Source: Mytilus californianus
Lineage: Eukaryota
Direction of reading: 5' to 3'
NCBI RefSeq assembly: GCF_021869535.1
Contig: NW_026262745.1
Coordinates: 33,480,001-33,544,000 of the forward strand
Length of the DNA: 64,000 nucleotides
Shown here: in pieces, positions 33,725-64,000 of the stretch
Layout: each line of letters begins with the position of its first letter
Position numbering within the stretch: the stretch's first letter is position 1
Notes under the pieces: model-generated
What the model saw: only the letters and a program-made list of their open reading frames with translations
Told to the model about the DNA's origin: nothing
Databases searched by the model: none
Made by a program: the position numbers and the translations under genes

Positions 33725-34974
33725 TGCTAAGTCCGAGGACGGACTTAATTGGGAGGAGAGGCATATGTGACCAGGGAAAATGCAGCTTCAGTTTAATATT
33801 TTGGACTTATAATAAAATTCTCAATTTTGATAATTTAGACTTTATTTCTATGTGTTTTAAAATTCATTTAATTTTATATTTTCGTTTCTATTTACATTTA
33901 ATATCCAGGACTTAAAATCAACATGCTTTGATATGCAATTTAATTCTCAGTTTGGACATTGAGTGACATGTTTTATTCTATAAGCTAATTAGTGACATTA
34001 AACCTTTTTCATTATTATATGTTTTTAAATATCATAATCAGATTAGTAAATTAACTTTATTCTTCAAGTTCTAAAAATAGTTTAACATGTTTAATCCTTG
34101 TCAGTGAACAATATTACTCAAATTAATTGTTATTTGTTATGTCTATACTTGTCAATTCAATTGTGTATAAATACTTGTTTATAATTTTTATAAGCAAGAT
34201 TTGGACTTAGGACTTTACACTGAACACAGTCCATCTGAAATAAAAGTATTAGTATTCCATGCTGAATTATTGGTTTATTCATCGCTAGTTCCAGAGTCTC
34301 AACAGTTAGTTTTCACCAGAGTTTCAGTGCCAAAGTTCTCATTGCTATTCACAGCAATCGTTCGTTGTGTGATCAGGTGCATCACACAGTTTCAGTAACA
34401 AGAGGCCATTCAGTCAGGCTCTTGTTACACAACCCTACAAGTCACCCAGTTTCCCCGGTGATACTTTCTCGCAGTAAATACTATATTCCATGGATTGCGT
34501 TGCCTTGATAGAATGTTACTGTTTTCGAGGAAGTTATTGGACAAAATATTCTTTATGGTAAATTATAAGTCATCTCTTCGAATGTTTCATAGAATTAATT
34601 GACCGTTATGGAATATCTTTGTCTCGGATTAGTTCGGATATGTTTAGTTTGTCGTAACCTCAAACCCGTCCCCCCTCTTCGTATTTAATATCTCCGAATG
34701 ACACATCGCAAGATTTTTAGTGCTCTTAAGGAAAATGCATGCCTCAAGTTTTTTCTAAGATCATCCATGGTATTTAAATAAAGTTTGTCTTGCGTTTGTT
34801 ATTGTTATTTTTGACATATTGAAGGACAACTTGTTGTTAGGGTCTGTGTTTTTTTTTTTTTTTTGTATCTGTCGTGGTCTTGTCTACCATAGATCCTGAA
34901 ATACTTTTGTTAGTGAAAAATTAATGGATTAATTTTCATTTGTTGTGTAGTGTTAAAAAAGGACGATAATTAGT

Positions 34975-46159: not shown

Positions 46160-49100
46160 TCAGTGACCATTTTGTTGTACACTTTTAACTTCATCTTCTG
46201 GTAGACTATTTGCTTCCTCTTCTAAAGCTAAAATCTGATCATAACTCATCTGTTCACAGCTACCACCTCGCCGTAACTTGATCAGAGCACATATTTTCTC
46301 CCAGTGTCTATGATTTTCTTTGACAGTATTATGTACAACTTTAGCTTCCACAAATAAATCTTGTAATACTCTGGAATTCAAATGAAATTATATTTTCATT
46401 CAACATTTTGCAAGAGTGTTGAGCCAATATTTTAGACAGTCAATTTTAAATAGTAATTAGTTAAAAATCAAAATTATTGATATAATATTTGAAATAGCTC
46501 TCGCCGCGATATAGCCTTTTAGTGCTGATGCAGAGTAAAGTAACCACCAATCAATTGAATAGTAATAAAAAATGTTTAAAATTATCAATATAAAAGAACA
46601 GACTTCCAATGTCCCCCACATTGCTAATATTTCATCTATCCAAGGGCAATAACTAAGAAATCTTTTTTTTTTGTTATTTAAAACTTTCAACATATATCTT
46701 AGAGAAATGAAGCATTGATAGTAAATACTATGCAATTATCAATATATTCAATATTTCCAATGGCATAACTCCTTTAAAAATATTTGATCTTGTCCGAGAC
46801 ATTGCTTATATAAACCTTTGATATAAATTTGATAAAAATCTGGCAAGAACTGTACACATGAGAGCACCAACAATGAAATTTCCCATATAATTAATATTTC
46901 CAAGGGGCATAACTCTTTTAAAAATTGTTGATCTGCACTGATTTTCTAACTTGTCCAAGACATTGCTGATATAAGTTTTATAAAAATCTGGCAAGAATTG
47001 TACATGTGAGAGCACTAAAAAGACCGAACAGAGTCCCTGTATTTCTATGTCCCCACGCAACGCTTTGCACAGGGGACAAAAATGTAAAAACCATGCATAT
47101 ATATCAAATTCATCATTAAATAAATGGGGAATGTGTGCCCCCGCTTGCATATTATGTTATAAAGGAACATAACTCAAGAACTGTAAAAGTGACGCTTCCC
47201 AAATTTGTACTTGATCTGTGTTTTGTGGTAATAAGCATTGTGTATAAGTTTCATAACATTTGGTTGAGGCAAACACAAGTTAGAGAATGGAATAAAATAA
47301 ACTGCTTCGCTGAGCGCAGCTGGATACGCCCGCAGAGGTCCAACCCTGAACAGTTGGGGCAAAAATGGACACAATATTCAAGCTTAATACAGGTCTGAAT
47401 TTAGATTGTAATTAAATATTTGACATATTACAGGTTTCTGAATAAATGTAGTCAAAGAACTTGAAATTGGTTATATGAATTGAATTTATATTCAATTAAA
47501 GATTTCTTGCTGTTGTGCAATACACTGTGCTGTTGCGCAATACTTAGTAAATCTGTTGTCAGACTATAAACAAATAAAGTTCAATCAATTCTCAATGTCA
47601 TATTAGAAATTTATGAAAATCAAAAGGGAGTTTACATCAATAGATATAAACAATTCACCAAAGTTTCATGAGAATTGGTGACAGCATTTTTGAGTTATTG
47701 TCCTAAAACTGGAAAATCCCCCCTTTTTTAATGAATAAAACCCCATAACTCAGAAATGTAAAATGTAAAATTTATAAAATTCTAAAGGGAGCTTACTTAA
47801 ATAGATATAAACAATTCACCATAATTTCATAAGAACTGCTGAAAGCATTTTCGAGTTTTTGTCCGAAAACTGGAAAATCCCCCTTTTATATGAATAAAAC
47901 CCTGTAACTCGGAAACGTAAAATCTAAAATTTATAAAAATCGAAATGGAGCTTATGTCAATAGATATAAACAATTCACCACAATTTCTTGCAAGTTGGTG
48001 AAAGCATTCTTGACTAATTGTCCGAAAACTGGAAAATCCCCCTTTTTTTAATGAATAAAACCCCATAACTCAGAAACGTCAAATTTAAAATTTATAAAAA
48101 ACAAAAGGGAGCTCACGTCAATAGATATAAACAATTCACCAAAGTTTTATGCAAATTGGTTAAAGCGTTATGAGTTAATGTCCGACATGTTGACGACGGA
48201 CAGACGGACGGACGGACAGATGGAAAACGGTATACCATAACACGTCCGGTAAACGGGTGTATAAAAATTCAACAATTTTTCCATTTGTAAAGGGCATAAC
48301 TCTAGAACGGTAAAAGTGACGCCACCAAAATTCAAACCTGATCTGTGTTTTGTGGTAATAAGCATTGTGTATAAGTTTCATAACATTTGGTTGAGGCAAA
48401 CTAAAGTTAGAGAACGGAAACAAAAAATTCAGCAATTTTTCCATTTGTAAAGGGGCATAACTCTAGAACTGTAAAAGTGACACCACCAAAATTCAAACTT
48501 GATCTGTGTTTTGTGGTAATAAGCATTGGGTATAAGTTTCATAACATTTGGTTGAGGCAAACTAAAGTTAGAGAACGGAAACCAATTTTGGGACGTACCG
48601 ATGGACAAGGGTAAAACTTAATGCCCCCTCTGCTATGGCGGGGGCATAAAAAATCATGAATGTCATATATGAAAAAGGTAGAGTTCTTACAACTTAGGAA
48701 ATTTACAGAATTGTGACCAGGATCTTTTTTACTTACCTATAAACAGGCAATGCTATATGATCTAGAAAACCAATTTGTAAATCTGGTATCCTAGCCTTTT
48801 CCCTATCCATCATCTCAGGAGGTGTTCTACCTAATGATTTCTCTAAATCTCCTTGAGAGAAAAATTCATTGTAGATTAAAGCCTACAAAACAGATAAATA
48901 CTTCATTATGAATTCAATACTTCAAATACAAATGCTATAAAAAATTGATTTGAAAAGCTAAGTTAAATTTTTAAACACTGGCATAAATTAAAACTGAAAC
49001 TATGAAAATTCTAAAAAGGGTACATTTAGGGTAATGTAATTTCATAAAAATATAAAGGCATGGGTTAAAACTTTAAGAAAATGTATCAAATATAATCTTA

Positions 49101-52100
49101 GGATAACAGCACATTTTAGAAACATTTTTTCACTAAATAAACATAGAGCATGTGTTGCTAAAAAACATTTGGCAAGCAAAATGATAAACACAAACAACTC
49201 TTCCTGTGTGAATATAACTGTATGTGGGGTTGTGCTCTTTATCATATCTCAACATTTATCACAAGTCAGTCAAGACTTTTTGCAATTTTGCCATTTAACT
49301 GAATTTATTGTCATTGCATAGCAATATAACTCATGAAAAGGGAAATAGTTTCACCTTCTGTCATGGCATGTAATAGCTGACTATAGGGTATAGGGTTTGC
49401 TCATTGCAGAAGGCAATCAAATTCATTTGGACTCTGCTGGATAGTTGTCTCATATCTCCTCATTTTATAAAAAAGAAAAACAGTGTCTTATCTAAGTAAA
49501 TATATTCAATGTTTAATTCTGCAAACTGGAGAAACTTTGAAAAACTTTTGATTTTAGGGTCATTGAACCTAAAATATATCTCCTCAACTCCTACATGGTT
49601 CTTGACAATTTATATTCAAATAAAATTGCAACATCATTGCCAAATTTCCCCTGTCCAATATACATTGTAATTGTTTTACACATAAACTGCAGAACAATAT
49701 CTACACACATACATTATTATCCAGTTTGAAGCTTTTGTAATTATTTCCTTAATTGTTGCAACTTCCATGGAAATGTAGCCATTTCTAAATGTGTTTTAAT
49801 GCTATTCACCTGAAATATTAGTATAATGTCAAGATTTCAGGAACTAAGAAACATATATGAAACTTTTCGTTTCTTGTTGTACAGCAGATGTTATTCTAAA
49901 CCACTTGTTAAGTAATGACTTACAGCGATATGTTTCGTTGAATCCCATGGCTTTGTTTGGTCAGAGAGATCTGATGCAGTCATTATTAAACATAACAATA
50001 GTTTTCTATGCTTAAGATTGGATTTTTCAAATTTATCTGTAATAAAAATGAATAATAAGATAATGAATCTATATTTATTTGCATTTCTATTTTGTATTAC
50101 AGTAACTGATAATTCACTAAAACAAGACTAAGATGATGCCCCACCCTATGCAAAAATATAGTTCTGCAGCATTAGACTTAGCCAACAGTGATGTTGAAAT
50201 AAAACTTAAAATGGTTGTTTTACTCTGTAAGGCACATTTGATAGCCCCATCATAGTTGTGATTTGGTTTATAAAGTTGGAAAATTAAGTTGTGTTGTTTA
50301 AACAGGAGGTAAAAAAAAGGTGAATGGTAATAATACAATTTGTACATAGTAAGTGCAATAAGGTCTCTGAAACTATAGAATGTTGCTTTGACTATATGCT
50401 TGAATATCTTAAAAATTATGTAATTGACTCATTGATGACTCTTTTGCTTTGTGTACCCTCTTATAATAACACCAGCTTTTTGAAGTGCAGGTAAGTGGTT
50501 TATAGTGATAGTCCTTTGATTTGTTTAATTTTTTTTTGTCATGAATACACCAGTGTATATCAATGTTCTCTTGTTTTTAACATGAATTGTTTCATTGTAT
50601 TTTGTTGGATCATACTGGTTTTTGTATGAACCAGAGTTATTAGTTGAAATTAACTCACTCATTAAAATTTGCATACTAAAATTCTTACTTTATGCTTAAA
50701 GAATTTTTTGTCTAGGCACTGGCTAATAATTTTTTATTCTTATACTTGTCCATGGCATTTAAAAATTCTTTTTATTGGGTTGAGGGTTACTTGAGGTTAA
50801 ATTTTTGTGTCAGTCCTTAAAACAATCAAGAAAATATGTTCATACAAGAAATCAGGGCAGGCACAAGTCTTTAAATAATTATAATTATTTTTTAGCAAAC
50901 TGTTTAAATTATAACTTGTGTCTATTATATTGTAAGGGCTATTTCAGAACTAAACACACAAGGGCATGTGAAGCACTTTTTTAAGATCCGACCATCCTTG
51001 GATATAAAAATTTTCATTTTTAGTTATAATTCTTAATACAAAATTCTAAGGAAAATGCGACCACCTATATTCAATTAATTTGAGCGCCTCCCATCCCCAT
51101 ACCATAAAATATTGGAACAGCCCTAACATCAGATCAAGGGTGAATCTTCAAACTTTTAGGGCAATTTTACTTCACTTTTAAGATGCTGAGAGAACAAAGT
51201 TCAAGCAGGTCTGTCACTGAAGTCACTCACTATCATGTGCCCTGATTATTACCTTTTGCCATAGCTTCAATATTCTTTAGAATCTTTAAATGATGAGCCA
51301 AATCAGTTGCTAAAATAATATCTCTCATCAAGTCTAAAACATGTTGATAATCCTAAAATAAAAGGACTATTATCAAACACTTTTCAACTCATGAATAAAT
51401 TCGGTGTACATTTGTAAAATAAACCATTTTTTTATTTCAGAGAATAGAGTGAGTGGTGTAAAAATTTTTTTTTTCAGTTTCTGCAAACTATTTTTTTTTT
51501 CACAATTCAATTTAGATTGGCTGTTGCAATAAGTCTAGTTTTTGACTCCTGAACCATGCAAATGGGTCATACCATACTTTGTTGGATAGTATTGAGTCAA
51601 ATACATAGTCTTATTTTAAAATAAGAATCTTCTTATTTGGTATGTTTTGTTTATTTTCATACTGAGACTAATGATGTTATTTGTTTATTCTGTCTTTAAA
51701 ATACACTTACCTTGCTTATTAAATTTTCATATATATTGCATCCTTCAGTATTTACTATACACATAGTTTGAGCAAAATGATGTCTCTGAAATAGATACAA
51801 AAAATATCAACTAACATATTCATTCTGCATCTCTTGAAAACATTTATGCCATAACATGTGTATAAGATACACCAATAAAGGCATTAGCTTGATTGGGTGT
51901 ATCTAATTTACACCAAGATAGTATGGTTAATGCAAATTGGTAGATTTCAGTAATTTAGGAGGGGTTGTGTTCAACAACTGTGTAAAATATCCTACACATT
52001 GACAGACAGATGAAAGACAAACAGAAAGACAGAGGAAGGACATGCAGATTCCTATACACTCCACCAAATTTGTGTTTCTAGTTGGGAGTAAAACATACAA

Positions 52101-55100
52101 AAGAATGCAACCATATACAATTATGGCTTGTAGAAAAGGTAAAATAAGTATTTAGGGTTGATAAATTTGGATATTCATAGATTAAGAGGGGCTAGAACTG
52201 TTTTTTTTAAAAGGGACATTTATGAGGGATATCCTAGGCACTAGATAAATTTCCAAGCCTTGTTTCCTCAACACTTGATGGCTTCTCTGGCAGTTGCCAT
52301 TTTGTGTACACATGCCTGCGATGTCATTTTGATGGGAGATAACTTGTGAACAAATCAAGAAGCTCAAAGGGTTATTCAATGGTGATTAATAGGGTAATTC
52401 ATCGCTAGGTATAAATTTTTAGGGTAATTTGTCCTTCCTTGGATTCATATGAAAATTATCTGAATTATTCCATGTCACTTGATAATGTGTTACCCAATAA
52501 AATTGTTTATTATACATGTAAGGTATAATAATAGCACATATCTCCCTGTTTCTATCCCTAGAATAATCAAAATCTGTGAGTAAAATACCCTTACTGAATA
52601 AAGTTTAAAAATCCTTAAACAGAGTTATCATGATGCAGGGAAATGTTTTAATCACTTGTATATTTGAGATATAGTTTATATTTCTAAACTATATATGATC
52701 AGTCAATGATGTCAAAATAACCATTTGGCAGGTGAAAGGCAAAAATGTGGAGTCTGACTCTGAGTCAAAAATACTGACCCAAAACAATAATTATGACAAA
52801 TCTTAATCTCATGTTTTTATTATTTAATATGTATTCTGAATATAATTGCTTTTCCTTTTTCTATTTATTATCCTTTATTCAACATGTTCTTTCTCATACC
52901 AACAAAATCTTACAGTAGTTAACAACTGGTGCCCTCTACTTACTGGAAATAAGAGCAAAATTAAGGACCAGAATGACAGAAGATTTCATTGTTTTTTTAG
53001 TATAACATGCCATCACATGTCATTTCTTACCTCTAACACAGCACCTTCTGAACTGTATAGAGCTGCCAGTACTGATTTCTATAATATAACAGACAGTATG
53101 TGATTATTGTATTGATACCTACAAGCAAGACCAATGTTTGTTTCATGAAAGAATATCAATATGATCATAAATCTATGTTTCCTATTTTAATGTGTACTCA
53201 AATCATATATGTACTGGTTGTCTATCTTTATATAGGAAATAACAAATAGTAGTTCTCCATTTGAATCATTCAACAGTTTAATTGTATGTATTTATGCTTC
53301 ATAAACTTATGTTTTAATTCTATAGTAATAAAAAGTATTGGGAGAAATTCATTTGATGAATAAGAAATATAGATCCTAAAGACTTTTAAAAAAGCCCTAT
53401 ACTATATATATACATAAAGCTAGGGAATTTGAATTTTACTAGTAAAATGTTTTTCAGCAATTACATCCATTTAATTAAAAAAAAAAGATTTTTAAAAAGC
53501 CCTATATACCGTCTTTTGGGATGTATAGTGCGCACCCCTTTATGGTCCAAGAAACGTGAGAAAAAATGTTTATTGTTCGTATAAGACTCGTAGACATTTT
53601 CGGAAAAGTTACAGCTCCAAAATCGGCAAACAGGAAGTCTATCGGTAAACTGGAAGTTTTTTAAATGGACACCGATGTCAGAGAATTCCGTACGGAATAC
53701 GTAATTGATATGAAATTGCAAATATTCTGACAAATGAGTAAGAATTTTATTAGATTGAGATAAATCTACATTTAAGTTTGTTTTTTTAAACCAAATTTAA
53801 TAAATTGTTTGAGTATCAAGGACAAGATTAAATATCCAAATTAATGTTCTGATTGAAACAATAACATAATTACGAATCATTAACATCATTAGTGCTGTTA
53901 TAAATTGTTAAAATCTCATTATTTTTATTTTTTGTTTGTCGATTCTAGCTGTTAATCCGGATTATCACACCTCAATCAACGGTCTAATCGTTGTCAAAAC
54001 AAATCAGTGACATGTTCACTTTGTTCCTAATTAAATTCATTCAGGTTACAATTATGGGATTATCATGATTTCAATCATAATTTCTTCTTGAACAGTTTTA
54101 AACAGTTACTTAAAAGTTACAAAGTAGAAACGTATTTATAAAAATAAACTTCTCATAGACTAAATCATCACTTTACAATATCAAGTCACATGACTGACCC
54201 ACATGACTGGCGATCACCTGATACATTAGAAAAAATGGCGGTTTATCTTTTCAAAACGAGCATGGTTTATTCAATTTTCATACACTTTTCTTCTACTCTC
54301 CATGATGAACACATACAAAAACAGTAAGTTATGACAACAAGGAACACAGAGACTAATTTAACCGACAACAAAAGCTTTATTGTGTCTTTATTAAGACATG
54401 GCAAATTTCCGGATTGCAAACAGATGGACACATTTACAGGATAAACGTAACTACAGAGATATAAAATGTATTTTATTTGAATAAAACATGACAAATCAAG
54501 AACAATAAGATACATATTACAAATATAACATGTAAAACATAAAAACAATCGAGGTTTTAGCAAAAATATTCCGTACTCTTCACTTCTCCTGGAAATTTCT
54601 TTGTCGGAGTTTGGACCTGAAAAAAGTCTTAAGAAAATGTCTGTAGGCATGTATAACGTGCACCCCTCTTACAAGAATCATGACCCAGGGTATAAATGTG
54701 TGCACTATACATACCAAAAGACGGTAATGGAATTTGAATTTTAATAGTAAAATATTTTTCAGCAAATACATCCATTTAATTATTCCTCACCATTGAAAAG
54801 TTTTATACTTTAAAAAAAAAGTATGTTTTCACATTATTGACAACTTACAGAAGCAACTTGATATGAATTATTTGTCCCTCTGTGATCAATATCATGGCAA
54901 AGGCAGGATACAAACAATGCAAACAATTCTATATCTCTGGAATAAAATATCATATTTAACAGAATAAAATATCATGTTTAGCAGAATAGAATACCAGATT
55001 TAACAGAATATTATTAGTTACATAGTGAGCTAGTGACCTAATACGATATATATGGGGTCAGTAAATTCCATATGGGGATTCTAGTGAAGCCCCATATGGA

Positions 55101-58100
55101 ATTTACTGACCCCATATATATCGTATTAGGTCAGTGAAGCCCCATATGGAATTTACTGACCCCATATATATCGTATTAGGTCACTAGCACACTATGTCAC
55201 GAATTTATTTTACCGACTATCTTAACATGTGGTATTTAGACTAGTGGCCTATCAAAGTGATCAAGTCATCAATACCGTTAGTAATAAGAACCTACTTCCA
55301 TTGGTCTATACAAAAACAAATGCCAACAATAACAACTTGTTAGCTTTAAATGTGTTTTATGAGTTTATTTCAATCATTCATCATCAATTTCTTTGTCTGT
55401 TAAAACCTTTAGGATTTCTCCTGAACACCGTGTTGTTTTTATAAAGGGATGTAACACCACTACTAAACGTGTATTGAAATAAGCCCCACCTACTAACCCA
55501 ATATGGAATATACACTGTCTCCACGCAGTTGCTTTTAACCAATCATATTTCTAGAAATGTTTAGGAGGTAAGATAAAATATCATATTTAACAGAATGGAA
55601 TACCAGATTTAACAGAATGGAATATCATATTTAACAAAATAGAATATCATATTTAAATGAAAAGAATGTTATATTTAACAGAATAAAATATCATATTTAA
55701 CAGAATAAAATATCATATTTAACAAAATAGAATATCATATTTAACTTAATAGAATATCATAGTTAACAGAATAGCATCATATTTGTCATAAAAAATACTA
55801 TTTTTTTCACTTTTAAACTGCAAACATTTTTATTTCAAGAGGGTATGCTTAGAGGGACAGATGAGTACTATGATAACTAATTTTTCACCTATAAATGTGT
55901 TACAAATCATAGTGGAATAATATGCTAAAGCCAACTTACAAATTAAAAATAAGTGTTCTAGTGACCTTTCCCTATGACCTGCTGGCCACCAATAAATAGG
56001 CATATTCAACCTTCCCTATATCTATATCTGTAGAAGTTATTTTAATCGAACAAGGGAAACTCAATTTACCATCAGGAGAAGTTTCATTTTAATCAAACAA
56101 GGGAAACTCAATTTACCATCAGAAGAAGTTTCATTTTAATCAAACAAGGGAAACTTAATTTACCATCAGGAGAAGTTTCATTTTAATCAAACAAGGGAAA
56201 CTCAATTTACCATCAGGAGAAGTTTCATTTTAATCAAACAAGGGAAACTCAATTAACCATCCGGACACCATTTTTCCAATTTTTTCCCCTCTTTTTAGTA
56301 ACAGTGACCTTGATCTTTATTCTATTGACACCATAATCAATAGGCTTCTCCCCCTTCCCTATATCTTCTATCTTGTAAGTTTTAGTTCAAGAAAGAGATA
56401 CTCAAGTTATCATCTGTAAATATTCAGGGAGCATAATATATGCAGAAATGAAAAGTTCATGTCTTGGTATGAGGAAACACCAAAAATCACCGGGATCAAC
56501 AACAACAACAAAACATAATATATGTTGCACAACTTGATGTCCTTTGAAGAATCTGTGCAAGTTTGGTGGAATTATGTCCAGCTGTTGCATATTTACAGAC
56601 TGATATATGCAAAAATGTCAACAATCTTTGTTTTGATTTGATAAACCAAACAATAAATTCAGATCAAAAATTAAAACAAGACGACAGAAATAATCCTAAT
56701 GTAACACTGAGGACATTGCTGTCATGAGACACACCTTGATACTATTTAATAAAAAAAAATTCTACAGTAATGTTAGTATTGCATGGACTTTAAACTGCAT
56801 AGTTTTTTCTTTTTTTGCTAAAATATTTTTATAAAACTTATACATGAAAAGTTAGCTTGACAAATATAATTGATGATATACTACTTACTCCATACATTCA
56901 TTCAACTTAAAATTCTTTATACACAGATAACAGAAATGTGCTACTGCAAAGGCATGCATCCAATTATGATATGGTGGGTTTCTGTATCCTTTTTTTACCA
57001 TCAATATAAATCTGTAATATATATAACACTTTCTTTATCACCAATAATAAATGTTAGCATATGACATATTGTCCTTACATATTTCCGTGAAAACAGTGGT
57101 TAAAACATATTAACATTAAATTTGACAGAATTTTCCTTCCATAATATTAACATTAAATTTGACAGAATTTTCCTTCCATAATATTAACATTAAATTTGAC
57201 AGACTTTTCCTTCCATAATATTAACATTAAATTTGACAGACTTTTCCTTCCATAATATTAACATTAAATTTGACAGACTTTTACTAAATATTCATAACAA
57301 GTTAATAAATTCAACAAAACTATTCCGCACATATTAGTCTATACACACTAAATATTTTTTCAAACATTTGAATGGGAATGTCCAACATTTTTTAGAAAAG
57401 AAAAACTGCATACTAGAATTCAGTTTAATATCTGAAGGCACAACAAAACGCTGACAGTATATCAGACGATGGAAATGACAGACATACAGTCAAACCTGCC
57501 GTAAATGTCACCTCTTTTTTAAGTAAAAACCTGTCTTGTCAGTTCATCCTTTCCTTGTTCTGCATTGGAATACCTTTGCATTTTGATCCTCAATTCAAAG
57601 TTCATCTCTCTTATAAGGTCAGTTTTCTCTTGACCCGAGAGCCACCTTTATATGCAGGTTTGACTGTAATTCATTGTTGGTTGTTGGAACCATTTTAGTG
57701 CAGTGAACTTTAAAAAATTCTTTTACAATTTGATTATCTGCTTGCTTAGTACCTTGCAAGTGTATCTCGCTTTATTCTCCATCTTGATATAAATCCTAAA
57801 TCTTCAAACATACTTAAACAGCACTGAAATGAAAAATAAGTAAGAAATTAAATAAAAAGAACATATAATTTCAAAACAGAATTTATTGTCAGAGTAAATG
57901 CCTATCAGTTATCTCTTGGTCCAAATACTTCATTGTCTACATAAAACAGTCTTTTGCTATTAATGAACAATGAACAAAATTTCACATGGAACTACCTGAC
58001 TGAGTTACACACTAGATTTTATGGCATTCAGCGAAATACATTTCTATGAATTTTATCTTAACAATTCATACACAAGTATGCATTGCCCTTTCAAACCTTA

Positions 58101-61100
58101 ATTCTTTTTCATTTGACTCCTAATCTAAGTGCAAGCTATTTTTCCTATTGTTAACTTACTCAAACTATTTAGGGCTATTCCATTAAAATGAATGCTCATG
58201 AAGGTAATCCAGAAAACTAATGTATAAATCATTATTTTCATTTTAAAGTAAGGGAGAAAATATTAGTTGTATGTCCAATCTGTAAAACAGTTTCAGATGA
58301 GATGGCTTCACAATGTATCATTGTTAAGATATAACAAAAAAAGATCAAAGTTTATAACGCCTGGTAAAATGGTCATATCAAAATGACAGTATAATAAGGT
58401 CAAAGAGAATGACGACAAATAACCCTACCAAGTATGCAAGCTTTCTGTCATACATTCTCAGAGTATTGATGTGTTTTTGACATACACACGAAAGGAGACC
58501 ATAACAACATTAAACTTTACAGTGTTGATTTTGTCTAGTGTGAGTAGGAACCCTAGCTTGTGTCATGAATCAATACACAATATTCTTTTGTTTTGATCAC
58601 AATAAAAGGTTTTACTATACTTAATTAATTAACTATATACAATCATATTGAATTACAGACTTCATGATCATAAAAATATAATACCACTGTCATATGATAC
58701 ATACTAATGGCGTGTCATCTTCTGGAACTTCTCTTGGTGGATAATTAAATTTGCTGAAATTAGGATGCCAGTGAGATGGAGGTGGAATTTCACTTTGTGC
58801 TAATTCCTGAACTTCATCACTTGCCACCTGGAATTCATAAAGGTGATTAGAATCTTTCATTCATCTCTGTCGTTTACTTAGAGCAAATTTGCAATACACC
58901 TTTGTAAATAAATTTTGGACTTGAAAGAAAGAGATTTTCAACTTTCTATGATAAACTGCATTTTAGTTTTATTGTTTTGTTTTGTTCTGCAGTATGTAAT
59001 TCAATAAGTCTACTTTTATGTTTATGATATAATTTAACATATTTATAAAATATAAACAAATAAGCAAGCATTATTTCTTTTAAAACATTTATTTGAAAAG
59101 AATTGTAATCTCTTAAAACTTAACATGCTGCCATCAGGTAGGCACATATTGGAATATAGAGTAAATGTAGGAAAAACTTGTTATTCTCTACTATTTCAAA
59201 CATTTCATCAGCATAAAATTGAGAATGGAAATGGGGAATGTGTCAAAGAGACAACAACCCGACCATAGATCAGACAACAGCCGAAGGCCACCAATGGGTC
59301 TTCAATGCAGCGAGAAACTCCCTCACCCGGAGGCGTCCTTCAGCTGGCCCCTAAACAAATATGTATACTAGTTCAGCATGCACTATTACACATGTATTTT
59401 GGTTAATTTTTTTTCTTTGGAGGGAGGGCAGTGTTTTTTGGTTGTTTATATGTATATAAAAATATTATGTTTGCCATAAACTGCACAAAAGTGTAACTAA
59501 ACTAATCCACAAAACATAACAAAGACACCAAAAAGCATTCCGTCACAATCATACATAATGTTCGGGTAATCAGGTAACTATAGGATGAACATGTCATGTC
59601 ATATTTCGTTTATATCATCAGTTCAATAGTGGTTGATTCAGTACTTTTTTTACATATTTTCTAAACTTTCCTTTTGATAAACTAAGAAATTATTAAGAAC
59701 CTAATGTTTAAACTTCCTCAGACAAAGCTGACCTTAGATGAATTTGGCTATTCTATTTAGGTCTTTTTTTGTCATTTACATCCTAACATTGCTACATATT
59801 TGTACATCTTTGGCTTTAAGCTGTTTGGGTTTGAACCTTCCAGATGAAGAAAGATCCAGAAAAAGTGTTATTTTGATTCAACTGATAGAGGGGGTGTAAT
59901 CAAACCAAATTAGAACATCTCATCGTTTAAACAATGATGACTCACCAAAAAACTAAACTCTTTGTCACAGCTTATATTGAAGGACTCTAAACCCTAATAA
60001 AGCATATGCTGTGGATTGGGTGAAATTGTTTTAAAGAAGTCAAATGCATAATCTAAAGGCAAAGCCACAAAAAAAAAAATATCAAAAGGCCCAGCTGCTG
60101 CACTACTGATGAACAATGACCTCTTTACCTTTAAAAAATCTACATATTTTCATTCTTTGACAACAAACCTGCATATGATAGATCATTAATTCATTTGCTA
60201 ATTTATTCCTGTGCTGTGATCGTTGTAACTTCTGGTACATAAGAGACTGAAATCAAAATTACAACATAAATACAGGAAAAGTAATCAAATGTTAAATTAT
60301 ACTTTGGTTAACTAAAAATATGTAAAGCGAACTACAACACAGATGCTATAAAGCTAATGAAGATTAAAAACTAAATATACTATCTATGTATGACTATAAT
60401 ACATGAACAGCTTAAACTTTAACCAGTTTTATATATTCTACATATTTCATCAGCTTTTAAAACTATCTATTTCCAAATTATTTGCACAATTAAAGAAACT
60501 TTATTTCAAAAACAGTGTAGAGTATATTTTAAATGCCTCAACAAAAAAGCAACTTTGTAAATAGTATCTATATATAAAAACAATATTAATTTTAATGTCA
60601 AAGCAAAAGTAGAAAATGAACTTTCAATTATCAAGACCAGCTGTTCATCCATTATATTTAGAAAAAAATGAGCTAAGAGTAAGTTATATCCAGTGCTAGA
60701 ATGATTTTGCATTAAGTTTTCAATTCATCCATCATACAAGAGTCAAAAGAATATAAGATATGTCTAAATTAATGTCTAAGATATTACATTTTAAGTTTTA
60801 AATGTCAGAATTCATATAACAATTCCCTGACTCTTGACCTTTTCATATAATTGATTTTTGATCAACTAATACAATCTTTCTTCATTCTAGCACGGGCAAA
60901 GAAAATCAATCTAATTACAAAACAGAATAACCAAAGAAATATCAAACAAGATGATTGAATTTATGTGTTATATAAGACGACAGTGTACGACAGGATACCT
61001 TCATATGATAAACCATTAATTCGTTAGCAAGGCTGTTACGATATTGAGCAGCTATGACTTTCTGGTACATCAAAGACTGTAATAATTGACAAATTCTTAT

Positions 61101-63343
61101 TATTAAATATTTCTATTCTAAAAAGATTTGGGAAACACATCCACTGGTATTTGCTGACAACAAGTACTCTGAGAGAAATGATCTGACATGTTGAATTATA
61201 TTTGATTGAATTGTCTTCTCTGAAGACCTTATCAACTCATCTCAGTTTTGAACAATGTGGCATTCTGGTATTCTATATAATTTAATCATATGTTACATAG
61301 ATACTATTCATATATTTTCACTGGCACGCCTCGTCCAATTTAAAAAAAAATTTGGTTTGGAGCATATAGGATAGTTTAAATAAGATTGTGTGTCCATAAG
61401 ACACTATTTCCCATTTAAGACATCATTGAATCACATTTTCATGCTCTGTAATGTATAAAATCTGGGTCAAAACTATAATTTAGCAAAAAAAATTTAAAGT
61501 TCACATCATTATGAACATTTGTACTAAGTTTAAAATTGAAGTGACCATAACTTCATGGCAAACTACAGTGACCAAAACCTTCAACCTAAAATGGGAAGGA
61601 CAAACCAACAATCTGACGAATGCAAAGACAAAGAACATAATGCCCCCTTACTATTGTAGGCAGGACATAAAAACATGCACAGTCAAGCTATCAATAGGAT
61701 CAACACTAACTTGGGACAAAAAAAGAAAGAACAGTACATGATTTGAAAAGCAGGGTCATAATTTGCTTGCTACTACAGGAAATCAAAGCAAGGTAAGGTA
61801 ACCACACTGTTGGTTGAATACTGCAACCCAAGAAAACAAAAAATCAATTTCAATTTAATACAATTCTTCTCTCTGCATGTGAACTTTAATAACAACAGCT
61901 TGTAATGACATTTAGAGACAATTCATCAAAGTTTATCATTTCAACTGAAATTGATTTTGCACTGTCAAATGATAATTTCATTTCATAACGATATAAAGAT
62001 ATCTTGTTACATCATCCATTTTAAATGTATCTTCCACAAAATTCTCACATATTCATAGAAAATTACATAAAAACCTTAAACCTTAATAATTTAAATACAC
62101 TGTTACTTACCAAGTTTCATCATTATTTAGATTAAAAACAGAAAGCAATTGAAACTAGTAGCATTTTAATAAAAGGATCTTAATGCTGAACAAATTAGGT
62201 CAAGTCAAGCAATTTCTGTCTTAAAGTACGTCTGTTAATTATGTCGACTAAACTCTTAATCAAGACTTGTTATGCATTTGTCTCTAAATTGTACAAAACA
62301 CTAGACTTCATAATAAAATTCTTTAAGGATTAAAATTATAAATAAAGCAACCATTTCTAAAATAGAAAGGATATTTACTAAACCCTTTGCATCTAACCAC
62401 TGAAAGACTAATATCCTTATTCCTCTCCAACAATCTTCTAGTGTCCTTAAACGAATCCTCAACAATATAACTGTTCATCTAGCCAGTAGCCTTAGGACTG
62501 ATGACCTTTGACAGTAGCAGGTTTGTGTCAATATAAGTAGTACTATTAGACTTCACAATAGACTTTTGAATTTCAAGTCCTGAAGCTGATTTTTAAGAAA
62601 ATTTTAGTTAGATTATATTGGCCTGTGGAGATGTTTTTTACAGGCCCGACAGAAGTTTTACAAGCCTGGGCTGGTGGGTATGTGGTTGAGCACGAAGACT
62701 GTACTATACTGTATTCTTGGACAATATCTATTTTATTTTACCTTTCACTTATCTGTTACCATGGATCCAGTTTTTGGACCCAAAGACAAAATATTTATCT
62801 TTGGGTTAAACCAGAGCTCCCAAAAAAAAATAATAAGAGTCAGCTGGACATTTTTTGACAATCCTGTTTATTTTTAACAATCAAGGTAATCATTAGGTAT
62901 CAAGGACAATGACTGACCACAGGCAATTTACTCTGAAAAAAAACCCCAATATACCTTCATATAACACAAGGAACCCAACTCCCATTTTTGAGAAATGACA
63001 CTCCGTCGCAAACTTTTGTTATATTTCTATTTTGTGGTTGTCTATCCTACTGAAACTTGTTATGTTGTAAATCTACATTTAATTATCTACAAGATGTAGG
63101 TCACGCTTATTTTTGTTGTTGGGATCATTTGTAGCAGGCCATCCAAGTTGGTTAACCTAAATTATTTCGTCTTCTCACAGTTCTCTCAAATTCAATATAT
63201 AAATGTATATTATTTGAAAGTACTTACATGACTTATACTAATACAACAGTAAACAGCAAATGCCGAAGCAACATCCTCATCAAAGGTGGTAAAATATGGA
63301 CCATTCATTTTATTACAAAGCTGAGCTACTCCTAACACATTAT
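46160..63343 (-). CDS. PDE2A: cGMP-stimulated 3',5'-cyclic nucleotide phosphodiesterase 2A orthologue, 3' part (5' exons lie beyond the window)
   Basis: Exons in transcription order: 63343-63228, 61076-60999 (or 60246-60169), 58827-58705, 57823-57753, 57011-56889, 54936-54849, 53078-53031, 51785-51711, 51352-51253, 50036-49924, 48882-48737, 46370-46160. All are AG/GT-bounded with matching phases. Peptides include [16 protein letters not shown] (GAF-B end), [78 protein letters not shown] and [14 protein letters not shown], all typical of PDE2. Confidence 0.96.
47120..48650 (+). mobile_element. Nested HINE-like elements: the 161-bp-array element (47297-48265) is inserted in another array element
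   Basis: Host units (aagggcataactc..ttcataacatttggttgaggcaaac..agttagagaa) occur on both sides of the insert, and the host ends with the hairpin gccccc..gcgggggc. The host family recurs at about 63610-64000. Confidence 0.8.
53507..54726. mobile_element. Tc1/mariner (pogo)-type non-autonomous DNA transposon in a PDE2A intron
   Basis: TA|ccgtcttttgggatgtatagtgcgcac ... gtgtgcactatacataccaaaagacgg|TA: ~27-bp TIRs with TA flanks and no transposase ORF. Confidence 0.8.
55011..55575. mobile_element. Short element with a 57-bp inverted repeat and an internal 50-bp duplication, inserted in a 22-bp minisatellite
   Basis: 55021-55077 is the reverse complement of 55140-55196 (1 mismatch), and 55083-55132 is repeated at 55133-55182. 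Units of aacagaataaaatatcatattt flank both sides (about 54940-55010 and 55575-55785). Confidence 0.75.
56031..56265. repeat. 47-bp minisatellite, about 5 copies
   Basis: caaggg anchors at 56051, 56098, 56145, 56192 and 56239. Confidence 0.92.
57107..57282. repeat. 37-bp minisatellite, about 5 copies
   Basis: atattaacattaaatttgacaga(a/c)ttttccttccata at 57107, 57144, 57181, 57218 and 57255. Confidence 0.92.
60169..60246 (-). CDS. PDE2A: PDE2A linker-helix exon, variant B ([26 protein letters not shown])
   Basis: gatttcag| acceptor, CAG|gtttgt donor, 78 nt, phase 0-0, no stops. Paralogous to variant A with many synonymous differences. Confidence 0.85.
60999..61076 (-). CDS. PDE2A: PDE2A linker-helix exon, variant A ([26 protein letters not shown])
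   Basis: ttacag| acceptor, AAG|gtatcc donor, 78 nt, phase 0-0. Matches the PDE2 SLLYKKV..QYRS.LANEMMMYHMK segment. Confidence 0.9.
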
Positions 63344-63418
63344 CTACAAAACAAAGGTGGTAAAATATGGACCATTATTTTATCACAAAGCTGAGCTACT
63401 AACACATTATCTACAAAA
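63281..63418 (-). repeat. Tandem duplication (71 + 67 bp) of a PDE2A splice acceptor and exon start
   Basis: 63281-63351 and 63352-63418 are near-identical. The transcriptionally upstream copy lacks 3 nt (GGA) and a further 1 nt, and has AAT>GAT. Confidence 0.9.
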
Positions 63419-64000
63419 CAAAATATACATATATCTATTTCTTTCTTTCCTAGATATGCTAAAGATTTTAAAAGTATTCAGCAAATAAGAGAGAAAATTT
63501 CAGGATTATATGCTTTCTTTCTGCAATTTTTTGTCAACCAAATTTATTTTCAAGGTGTACTGTGGTGTTAGAGTTTATTAGAACGTCACAAACTATGTCT
63601 TTAAAAAAAATAAAGGAAGAATGTGTCTGAATACACGAATGCCTCCGCTCAATCTTTGCAATTTTCCAAGTTCAAAAGGGGCATAATTCTAGAACAGTAT
63701 ATGACTTAACAACTCAAATTTGAACTCTGTCTGCAGGTTGTCGTTTTTAGCATTGTGTGTGAGTTTCATAAAATTTGGATGAGACAAACAAGTAACTGTG
63801 CGGAAACAAAAAAAATTTGCAATTTTCCAACTTATAAAGGGGCATAACTCTAGAACAGTTAGTGACTCACTGCCCAAATTCAAACTCTGTCTACGAGCTT
63901 TGGTTCTAAGCATTGTGTATGAGTTTCATAAAATTTGCATGAGGCAAACTTAAGTTAGAGTGCAGAAACAAAAATTGGACGGACAGACCGACTGAAAAAC

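Follow-up and report, generated by a model that had tools for sequence, protein, structure and literature searches.

A PDE2A-like gene of the mussel Mytilus californianus carries, one after the other, two versions of the 78-nt exon for the first 26 residues of the linker helix LH2. In transcripts of related organisms both versions, here called exon A and exon B, are spliced to flanking exons, and both are deeply conserved. We consider it very probable that the tandem duplication took place before the molluscan classes arose, that each mRNA takes either A or B, and that the choice likely alters the way in which GAF-B is coupled to the rest of the enzyme.

The duplicated linker exon

The window, by which is meant the whole 64 kb stretch of DNA analysed, contains the following parts of the gene.

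63228-63343, minus strand: upstream constitutive exon, C-terminal end of GAF-B, donor CAT/gtaagt (tblastn with mollusc PDE2A; spliced contigs of transcript sets X4 and X5)
60999-61076, minus strand: exon A, upstream LH2 variant, 78 nt, phase 0 (translation and splice sites)
60247-60998, minus strand: A-B intron, 752 nt
60169-60246, minus strand: exon B, downstream LH2 variant, 78 nt, phase 0 (translation and splice sites)
58705-58827, minus strand: downstream constitutive exon, beginning of the segment that runs into the catalytic domain (tblastn; contig of transcript set X5)
46166-57826, minus strand: catalytic-domain exons of the same gene (tblastn)
57826-57749, 57013-56858, 54959-54843 and 53078-53031, minus strand: catalytic exons, approximate, first part (tblastn)
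51794-51711, 51352-51248, 50031-49921, 48882-48736 and 46372-46175, minus strand: catalytic exons, approximate, second part (tblastn)

The PDE2A proteins of Pecten, Ostrea, Potamilus and Haliotis were run against the window using tblastn. The PDE2A-like proteins of molluscs can be followed exon for exon from 63341 to 46166, a region that corresponds to the end of GAF-B and the entire catalytic domain. Those of Pecten, Ostrea and Haliotis that are aligned by the window exons carry PF01590, PF13185 and PF00233, and the tandem GAF and PDEase_I architecture of PDE2A was found together with PDE2-type sequence, the 5' half of the gene lying outside the window. What the window holds is thus the 3' half of a PDE2A-like gene of Mytilus, encoding a putative cGMP-stimulated GAF-domain phosphodiesterase. 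PDE2A is a cGMP-stimulated dual-substrate PDE.

The whole of exon A can be aligned with residues 551-576 of human PDE2A (9lrn_A) and with residues 338-363 of 3ibj_A, with E about 1e-5. In the human protein residues 551-576 are LH2, the helix that follows GAF-B and lies between it and the catalytic domain. A preliminary description of this DNA, made from the letters alone, had assigned the exon pair to the helix linking GAF-B and the catalytic domain of PDE2A, and the alignment supports this assignment.

The same description reported two paralogous 78-nt phase-0 exons 752 nt apart, both open and with intact splice sites. Their coordinates and translations match ours exactly, the AG/GT flanks are confirmed on the minus strand, and the edges of the neighbouring exons that it implied, 63228 at the end of the upstream exon and 58827 at the start of the downstream exon, are both in phase 0. 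Exon A is bordered by the acceptor attacag/TCT and the donor AAG/gtatcc (gtatcctgt), and exon B by the acceptor atttcag/TCT and the donor CAG/gtttgt. The polypyrimidine tract of exon A is weak and A-rich (45% pyrimidine), while that of exon B has 64%. The intron between the upstream exon and exon A is 2151 nt long and that between exon B and the downstream exon, whose peptide begins VASDEVQE and includes PEDDTPL, is 1341 nt long. The same exon length, phase 0 and AG...GT flanks are found for both exons in M. edulis and Physella.

Exons A and B are identical at 51 of 78 nucleotides and 18 of 26 amino acids. Sixteen codons differ, eight of them synonymously and eight non-synonymously. A six-frame scan of the full 64 kb gave a cross score between A and B of 98, with every other 26-residue segment scoring below 35, and found no third copy of the linker exon. 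Rfam and tRNA scans of 58500-63700 gave no match.

Use of the two exons in transcripts

Transcript evidence came from assembled contigs of two related organisms (X4 and X5), in which rare variants are dropped, and from a raw RNA run of M. californianus (X18). In X18, of which about 6% was read, depth on the gene was almost zero and there were no junction counts. In X4 a single contig of 1793 nt links 58705-58825, 60167-60246 and 63228-63344, with GT..AG ends, and therefore contains the downstream exon, exon B and the upstream exon. Exon A is present in X4 solely as an unspliced piece of 154 nt with a depth of 2.4.

In X5, both exons are spliced in. The joints 63228>60246 and 60169>58827 are found on one contig with a depth of 81.1, and the joint 63228>61076, from the upstream exon to exon A, has a depth of 27.8. 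The contig of the upstream exon has a depth of 111.3, close to 81.1 + 27.8, and its last 3 nt beyond the junction are the TCT common to A and B; the contig of the downstream exon has a depth of 90.6, and its last 2 nt beyond the junction are the AG common to A and B. These contig ends and additive depths give the de Bruijn pattern of an upstream exon followed by either A or B and then by the downstream exon. Coverage of exon A in X5 is limited to some 78 nt (the bin mean of 12.8 agrees with 27.8 x 78/174), so the contig does not extend into the intron. Exon B is the major form in both X4 and X5, and exon A is a minor form in X5.

Among the junctions that the preliminary description proposed to count, 63228>61076, 63228>60246 and 60169>58827 are seen in X5, while 60999>60246 and 60999>58827 are not among the joints listed. 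The latter of these, which would join exon A and the downstream exon, we infer from the contig ends and depths in X5. No A>B joint, and no joint directly from the upstream to the downstream exon, is found among the joints listed for the X4 and X5 contigs. An exon that is never spliced in had been named as evidence against the pair, and neither exon is of this kind: exon A is joined to the upstream exon in X5, and exon B is spliced in X4 and X5.

Transcripts from oyster point the same way. Full-length ORFs containing only A or only B are found on intron-free Logan contigs of 3-5 kb, for example an A-only ORF on a 3102-nt contig of SRR6679077 and a B-only ORF of 932 amino acids on a 3983-nt contig. 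Two mytilid transcript contigs are B-only.

RefSeq contains pairs of isoforms of equal length that differ only in the linker exon in seven species, as follows (isoform numbers are those of RefSeq).

Mytilus: M. trossulus X1 (B) and X2 (A); M. edulis XP_071126258 (B) and XP_071126259 (A); M. galloprovincialis X3 (B) and X4 (A)
Scallops: Pecten maximus X1 (A) and X2 (B); Argopecten X5 (A) and X4 (B)
Oyster: Magallana gigas X1 (A) and X2 (B)
Octopus: Octopus bimaculoides X2 (A-like) and X1 (B-like)

Five species (M. californianus, M. edulis, M. galloprovincialis, M. trossulus and M. coruscus) have RefSeq isoforms whose exon B peptide is identical to that of the window, and an identical exon A peptide is present in M. 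trossulus X2 and X7 and in isoforms of M. edulis and M. galloprovincialis. Of the proteins compared, those of M. californianus match the window best. M. californianus itself has only B forms in RefSeq. As a rule, the NCBI pipeline adds alternative variants only where they have support from transcript or RNA-seq alignments.

Transcripts with either exon alone are thus represented by B in X4 and X5, by the joint of the upstream exon to A in X5, by the RefSeq pairs and by the oyster contigs. The spliced contigs, the RefSeq pairs and the oyster contigs support the original proposal of a tandem-duplicated pair that is used alternatively. Two forms of the enzyme would result, each mRNA including exon A or exon B.

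A different reading is that the exons are not strictly exclusive. One of them might be constitutive or a cassette exon, with some mRNAs containing both and encoding an LH2 that is longer by 26 residues. Inclusion of both exons preserves the reading frame and would escape NMD, and the A-B intron has ordinary AG and GT ends. Gene models in which A is followed by B do exist. M. edulis has two of them, CAG2185212 and CAG2185215, and in Pomacea (X2, X5-X8) and Physella (X1, X2) every isoform listed in RefSeq is of this type. Further tandem models, from submitters or from RefSeq, are found in six other molluscs (Pinctada, Ruditapes, Batillaria, Nucella, Babylonia and Ylistrum). However, gene predictors routinely chain duplicated exons that are in frame. 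The M. edulis annotation, which was made by BRAKER with RNA-seq hints (PMC9063065), also has an A-only and a B-only model. A search seeded with an A+B model found no protein derived from a transcript contig that has both exons, which is a weak negative. The additive depths in X5, where the B contig runs unbranched from the upstream to the downstream exon, and the equal-length RefSeq pairs also count against joint inclusion, and we regard this reading as improbable. The mutually exclusive reading proposed at the outset holds as far as alternative use is concerned, but in view of the tandem models of M. edulis, Pomacea and Physella exclusion may not be strict everywhere.

Conservation and age of the pair

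Comparison of the window with M. edulis shows that both exon A and exon B are identical at 78 of 78 nucleotides. The figures for the constitutive neighbours are 113/116 for the upstream exon and 118/123 for the downstream exon, and the introns are identical at 83.5-88.5% of aligned columns, or about 85%. The A-B intron is better conserved than the adjoining introns, with 96% identity over its first 150 nt. Regulated alternative exons are typically recognised by just this combination, stronger conservation than in the constitutive neighbours and a conserved stretch of flanking intron.

The two exon types can be recognised by their signatures well beyond Mytilus. A-type exons have V7, a mostly hydrophobic residue at position 12, S or N15, M22 and K26, and B-type exons have L7, H12, R or K15, I22 and Q26, often with C1. 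Both types are present in bivalves, gastropods, cephalopods and a chiton, which answers the question raised in the preliminary description of whether other molluscs have both exons. In every model or locus that shows both, A is upstream of B. Mya arenaria seemingly has three copies.

A tree of the 26 columns separates the A-type exons of all molluscan classes from the B-type exons, with branch support of 86/92. The number of label changes on this tree is two for A and one for B, compared to about 15 for shuffled labels. The placement of the Lingula copies and of the vertebrate exon on the same tree is unreliable. Because the A-type and the B-type exons of all classes group apart, the duplication of the linker exon predates the divergence of the molluscan classes.

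Outside the molluscs, the search for both exons in other lophotrochozoans, also proposed in the preliminary description, gave a divided result. In Lingula anatina there is a second copy of 78 nt, intact but unannotated (L003, 34087-34164); it is preceded by cag and followed by gtaacg, and sits 1.2 kb upstream of the annotated exon. The annelids Capitella and Paralvinella have a single copy each, as has the sea urchin Diadema. In vertebrate PDE2A there is one linker type in all the proteins compared.

It is extremely improbable that one copy is a dead duplicate that is still open by chance: the unspliced, low-depth exon A of X4 and the B-only RefSeq entries of M. californianus would fit such a reading, but X5 shows exon A joined to the upstream exon, both exons are identical at every nucleotide between two Mytilus species whose introns are about 15% different, and both types have been retained in four molluscan classes.

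A changed face of the linker helix

The A and B forms of the Mytilus enzyme differ at 8 of 26 residues. Across the Mollusca the positions that are diagnostic of A or B are 7, 8, 12, 15, 22 and 26; position 1 separates the types less cleanly. In human PDE2A these six positions correspond to V557, N558, Y562, H565, M572 and K576. Positions 1, 8, 15 and 22 are spaced by exactly seven residues, and positions 12 and 26 fall alongside them. Plotted on a helical wheel, the positions diagnostic of the two types fall together (R = 0.75, permutation p 0.003-0.03); the eight Mytilus differences taken alone give no significant helical clustering (p = 0.16). Judged from the molluscan sequences, the residues that distinguish A from B occupy one face of the helix. 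This face is hydrophobic or aromatic in A (I8, Y12) and polar or basic in B (Q8, H12, K/R15).

The corresponding helices have been characterised in related enzymes. In PDE6 the LH2 helices provide about 685 square angstroms of the dimer interface and cross over each other (PMC6392808), and in a PDE6C/PDE5 chimera LH2 holds the H-loop of the partner subunit in the open state (PMC13199883). Since LH2 contacts both the other subunit and its H-loop, a change along one face could shift the balance between closed and open states. By analogy, the altered face would change the link between occupancy of GAF-B and opening of the catalytic sites, and the choice of A or B would likely affect either the basal activity or the gain of activation by cGMP.

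We tentatively suggest a more extended hypothesis, which may well prove too broad. The choice of A or B may be an ancient molluscan, possibly lophotrochozoan, switch that resets the allosteric gain of PDE2A through the LH2 face that meets the LH2 or the H-loop of the partner. Dimers could then be AA, BB or asymmetric AB, with different basal activity or sensitivity to cGMP. The second exon of Lingula would in this case derive from the same event, and the annelids would have lost it.

The signalling route in GAF-PDEs, from GAF-B through LH2 to the catalytic domain, is still argued from few structures. The A and B isoforms of mussel or oyster offer a natural pair for probing the effects of LH2 side chains on basal activity and on activation by cGMP.

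How one exon might be chosen

The preliminary description had pointed out that steric exclusion and a frame-shift leading to NMD do not apply here, and we agree. Steric hindrance is excluded because the A-B intron is 752 nt long, and NMD because all combinations of the exons remain in frame. The most likely route, in which we have low confidence, would be regulated exon definition, acting through intronic elements or the conserved flank just downstream of exon A.

Competing intronic RNA pairings, in which a docking site pairs with selector sequences, are one of the mechanisms that had been predicted, and on present evidence we consider them unlikely. Some candidates are found in both the window and M. 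edulis. A stem formed by 62003-61991 with 61006-60994 lies over the exon A donor, a hairpin formed by 60266-60255 with 60232-60221 lies over the exon B acceptor, and the A-B intron has a perfect 12-bp stem, 60893-60882 with 60704-60693. The higher conservation of this intron relative to its neighbours would also be consistent with pairing. However, 148 stems of at least 10 bp are kept in both species within these AT-rich 4.6 kb, and no stem stands out from the others. Since the arms do not differ between the window and M. edulis, they provide no covariation, and an arm at 61294-61318, which can pair at two sites upstream of exon B, is outside the sequence that can be aligned to M. edulis. The fold z-score of the intron is only -1.72. 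Duplex folding between whole conserved blocks merely scaled with block length, and was discarded. No convincing docking and selector pair thus emerged from the two-species stem screen and the fold z-score.

A further route, and a very improbable one, is incompatibility between the U2 and U12 spliceosomes, as in JNK, where a U12-type donor on exon A could not be joined to the U2-type acceptor of exon B. The consensus for the U12 5' splice site is RTATCCTT. The donor of exon A, GTATCCTGT, is U12-like, matching seven of the eight positions of the consensus, and is identical in M. edulis. The donor of exon B (gtttgt) is, however, U2-like and yet uses the same downstream acceptor, which fits the U12 branch-site consensus only poorly. 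The feature is also not conserved with the pair: the exon A donor of Physella is gtaatt, and the donors of Lingula are gtaacg and gtgaga. With no U12-like donor in Physella and Lingula, and without the U2/U12 arrangement of the JNK type in the mussel, the U12-like donor was dropped as a general mechanism. Regulated exon definition remains our preferred reading.

Comparison with known systems

Tandem-duplicated mutually exclusive exons are well known (PMC9741552, PMC8373072). The mussel pair resembles them in consisting of neighbouring homologous exons that match in length and phase, with probably one per mRNA, in being an ancient pair conserved at the nucleotide level, and in giving isoforms that differ in one homologous segment. 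It differs from the catalogued tandem duplicated exon substitution events in being molluscan (and perhaps shared with Lingula), not vertebrate. PDE2A and phosphodiesterases are absent from the text of PMC9741552, and no published description of a splice switch in the linker of PDE2 was found in the literature. Both isoforms of the PDE2A linker are already in RefSeq, and the event is a deeply conserved case of a well-known and ordinary kind.

Of the individual systems, exons 6a and 6b of JNK (MAPK8-10) are alike in being an in-frame cluster of two exons whose intron is too long for steric exclusion, and the mussel exon A donor is U12-like. The resemblance to the U2/U12 type of JNK does not extend to the exon B donor and the common acceptor of the mussel, which are U2-like, nor to Physella and Lingula, from which the U12-like donor is absent. 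Dscam, 14-3-3zeta and ATE1 are also alike, in that they have duplicated exons in frame for which NMD and steric hindrance cannot explain exclusion; they differ in that the screens of the mussel introns gave no convincing docking and selector pair. The mussel exons are a further clean in-frame cluster of two exons whose exclusion is explained neither by steric hindrance nor by NMD.

A further comparison is with PDE2A of vertebrates. There the isoforms PDE2A1-3 are distinguished by their N-termini, which set their localisation. Human and vertebrate PDE2A (3IBJ, 9LRN) has the same domain order as the mussel enzyme and the same 26-residue segment of LH2. Vertebrate PDE2A isoforms thus vary at the N-terminus, whereas mussel PDE2A varies in the allosteric linker, of which two versions would have been kept in one gene for roughly half a billion years.

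Linker exons in other species

Tandem duplication of the LH2 linker exon is not confined to molluscs. At the Lingula anatina locus (GCA_001039355.2, L003), positions 34087–34164 contain an intact, unannotated second copy of the 78-nt exon, with AG/GT ends; the annotated copy is found 1.2 kb further downstream.

In Mya arenaria (protein models P0209 and P0213), two different A-like copies are found in tandem in one model and a B-like copy is present in a RefSeq isoform; there may therefore be a cluster of three exons in this species. In the model for the chiton Liolophura sinensis (P0199), the A-type exon is connected to the B-type exon by a read-through stretch of 46 residues, which implies that the intron separating them may be only about 138 nt long and open in frame. 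The land snail Bradybaena similaris has two PDE2-like models on separate contigs (P0214 and P0216), one having an A-type linker and the other a degenerate B-like linker. The exon pair may have been resolved into two genes in this snail.

In two gastropods, exon A is followed by exon B in every RefSeq isoform listed, namely in Pomacea (P0174, P0289–P0292) and in Physella (P0203, P0295; locus L005, 64330–65324). One submitter model for Pomacea contains exon A only. The isoforms carrying both exons could be either genuine double inclusion or an artefact of prediction; if they are real, LH2 would be 26 residues longer.

Sequence features around the linker exons

The acceptor and the 5' part of the upstream GAF-B exon are duplicated in tandem, as a copy of approximately 70 nt (63345–63420, minus strand; repeat families D2 and D3) that immediately precedes the real acceptor. 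This copy has lost the reading frame and retains a decoy acceptor, ttttgtag. At the M. edulis locus (L001, 7407–7641), the same repeat unit is present in more copies.

Within the intron between exon B and the downstream exon, positions 59196–59376 are covered extremely deeply in each of the four runs, the summed contig depth reaching approximately 1e6. The contigs include many variants, with loose ends at 59213 and 59376. The segment looks like a high-copy, expressed, SINE-like repeat; ARAGORN and Rfam searches over it gave no match.

The donor of exon A, gtatcctgt (60990–60998, minus strand), is identical in M. edulis, and resembles the consensus of the U12-type 5' splice site.
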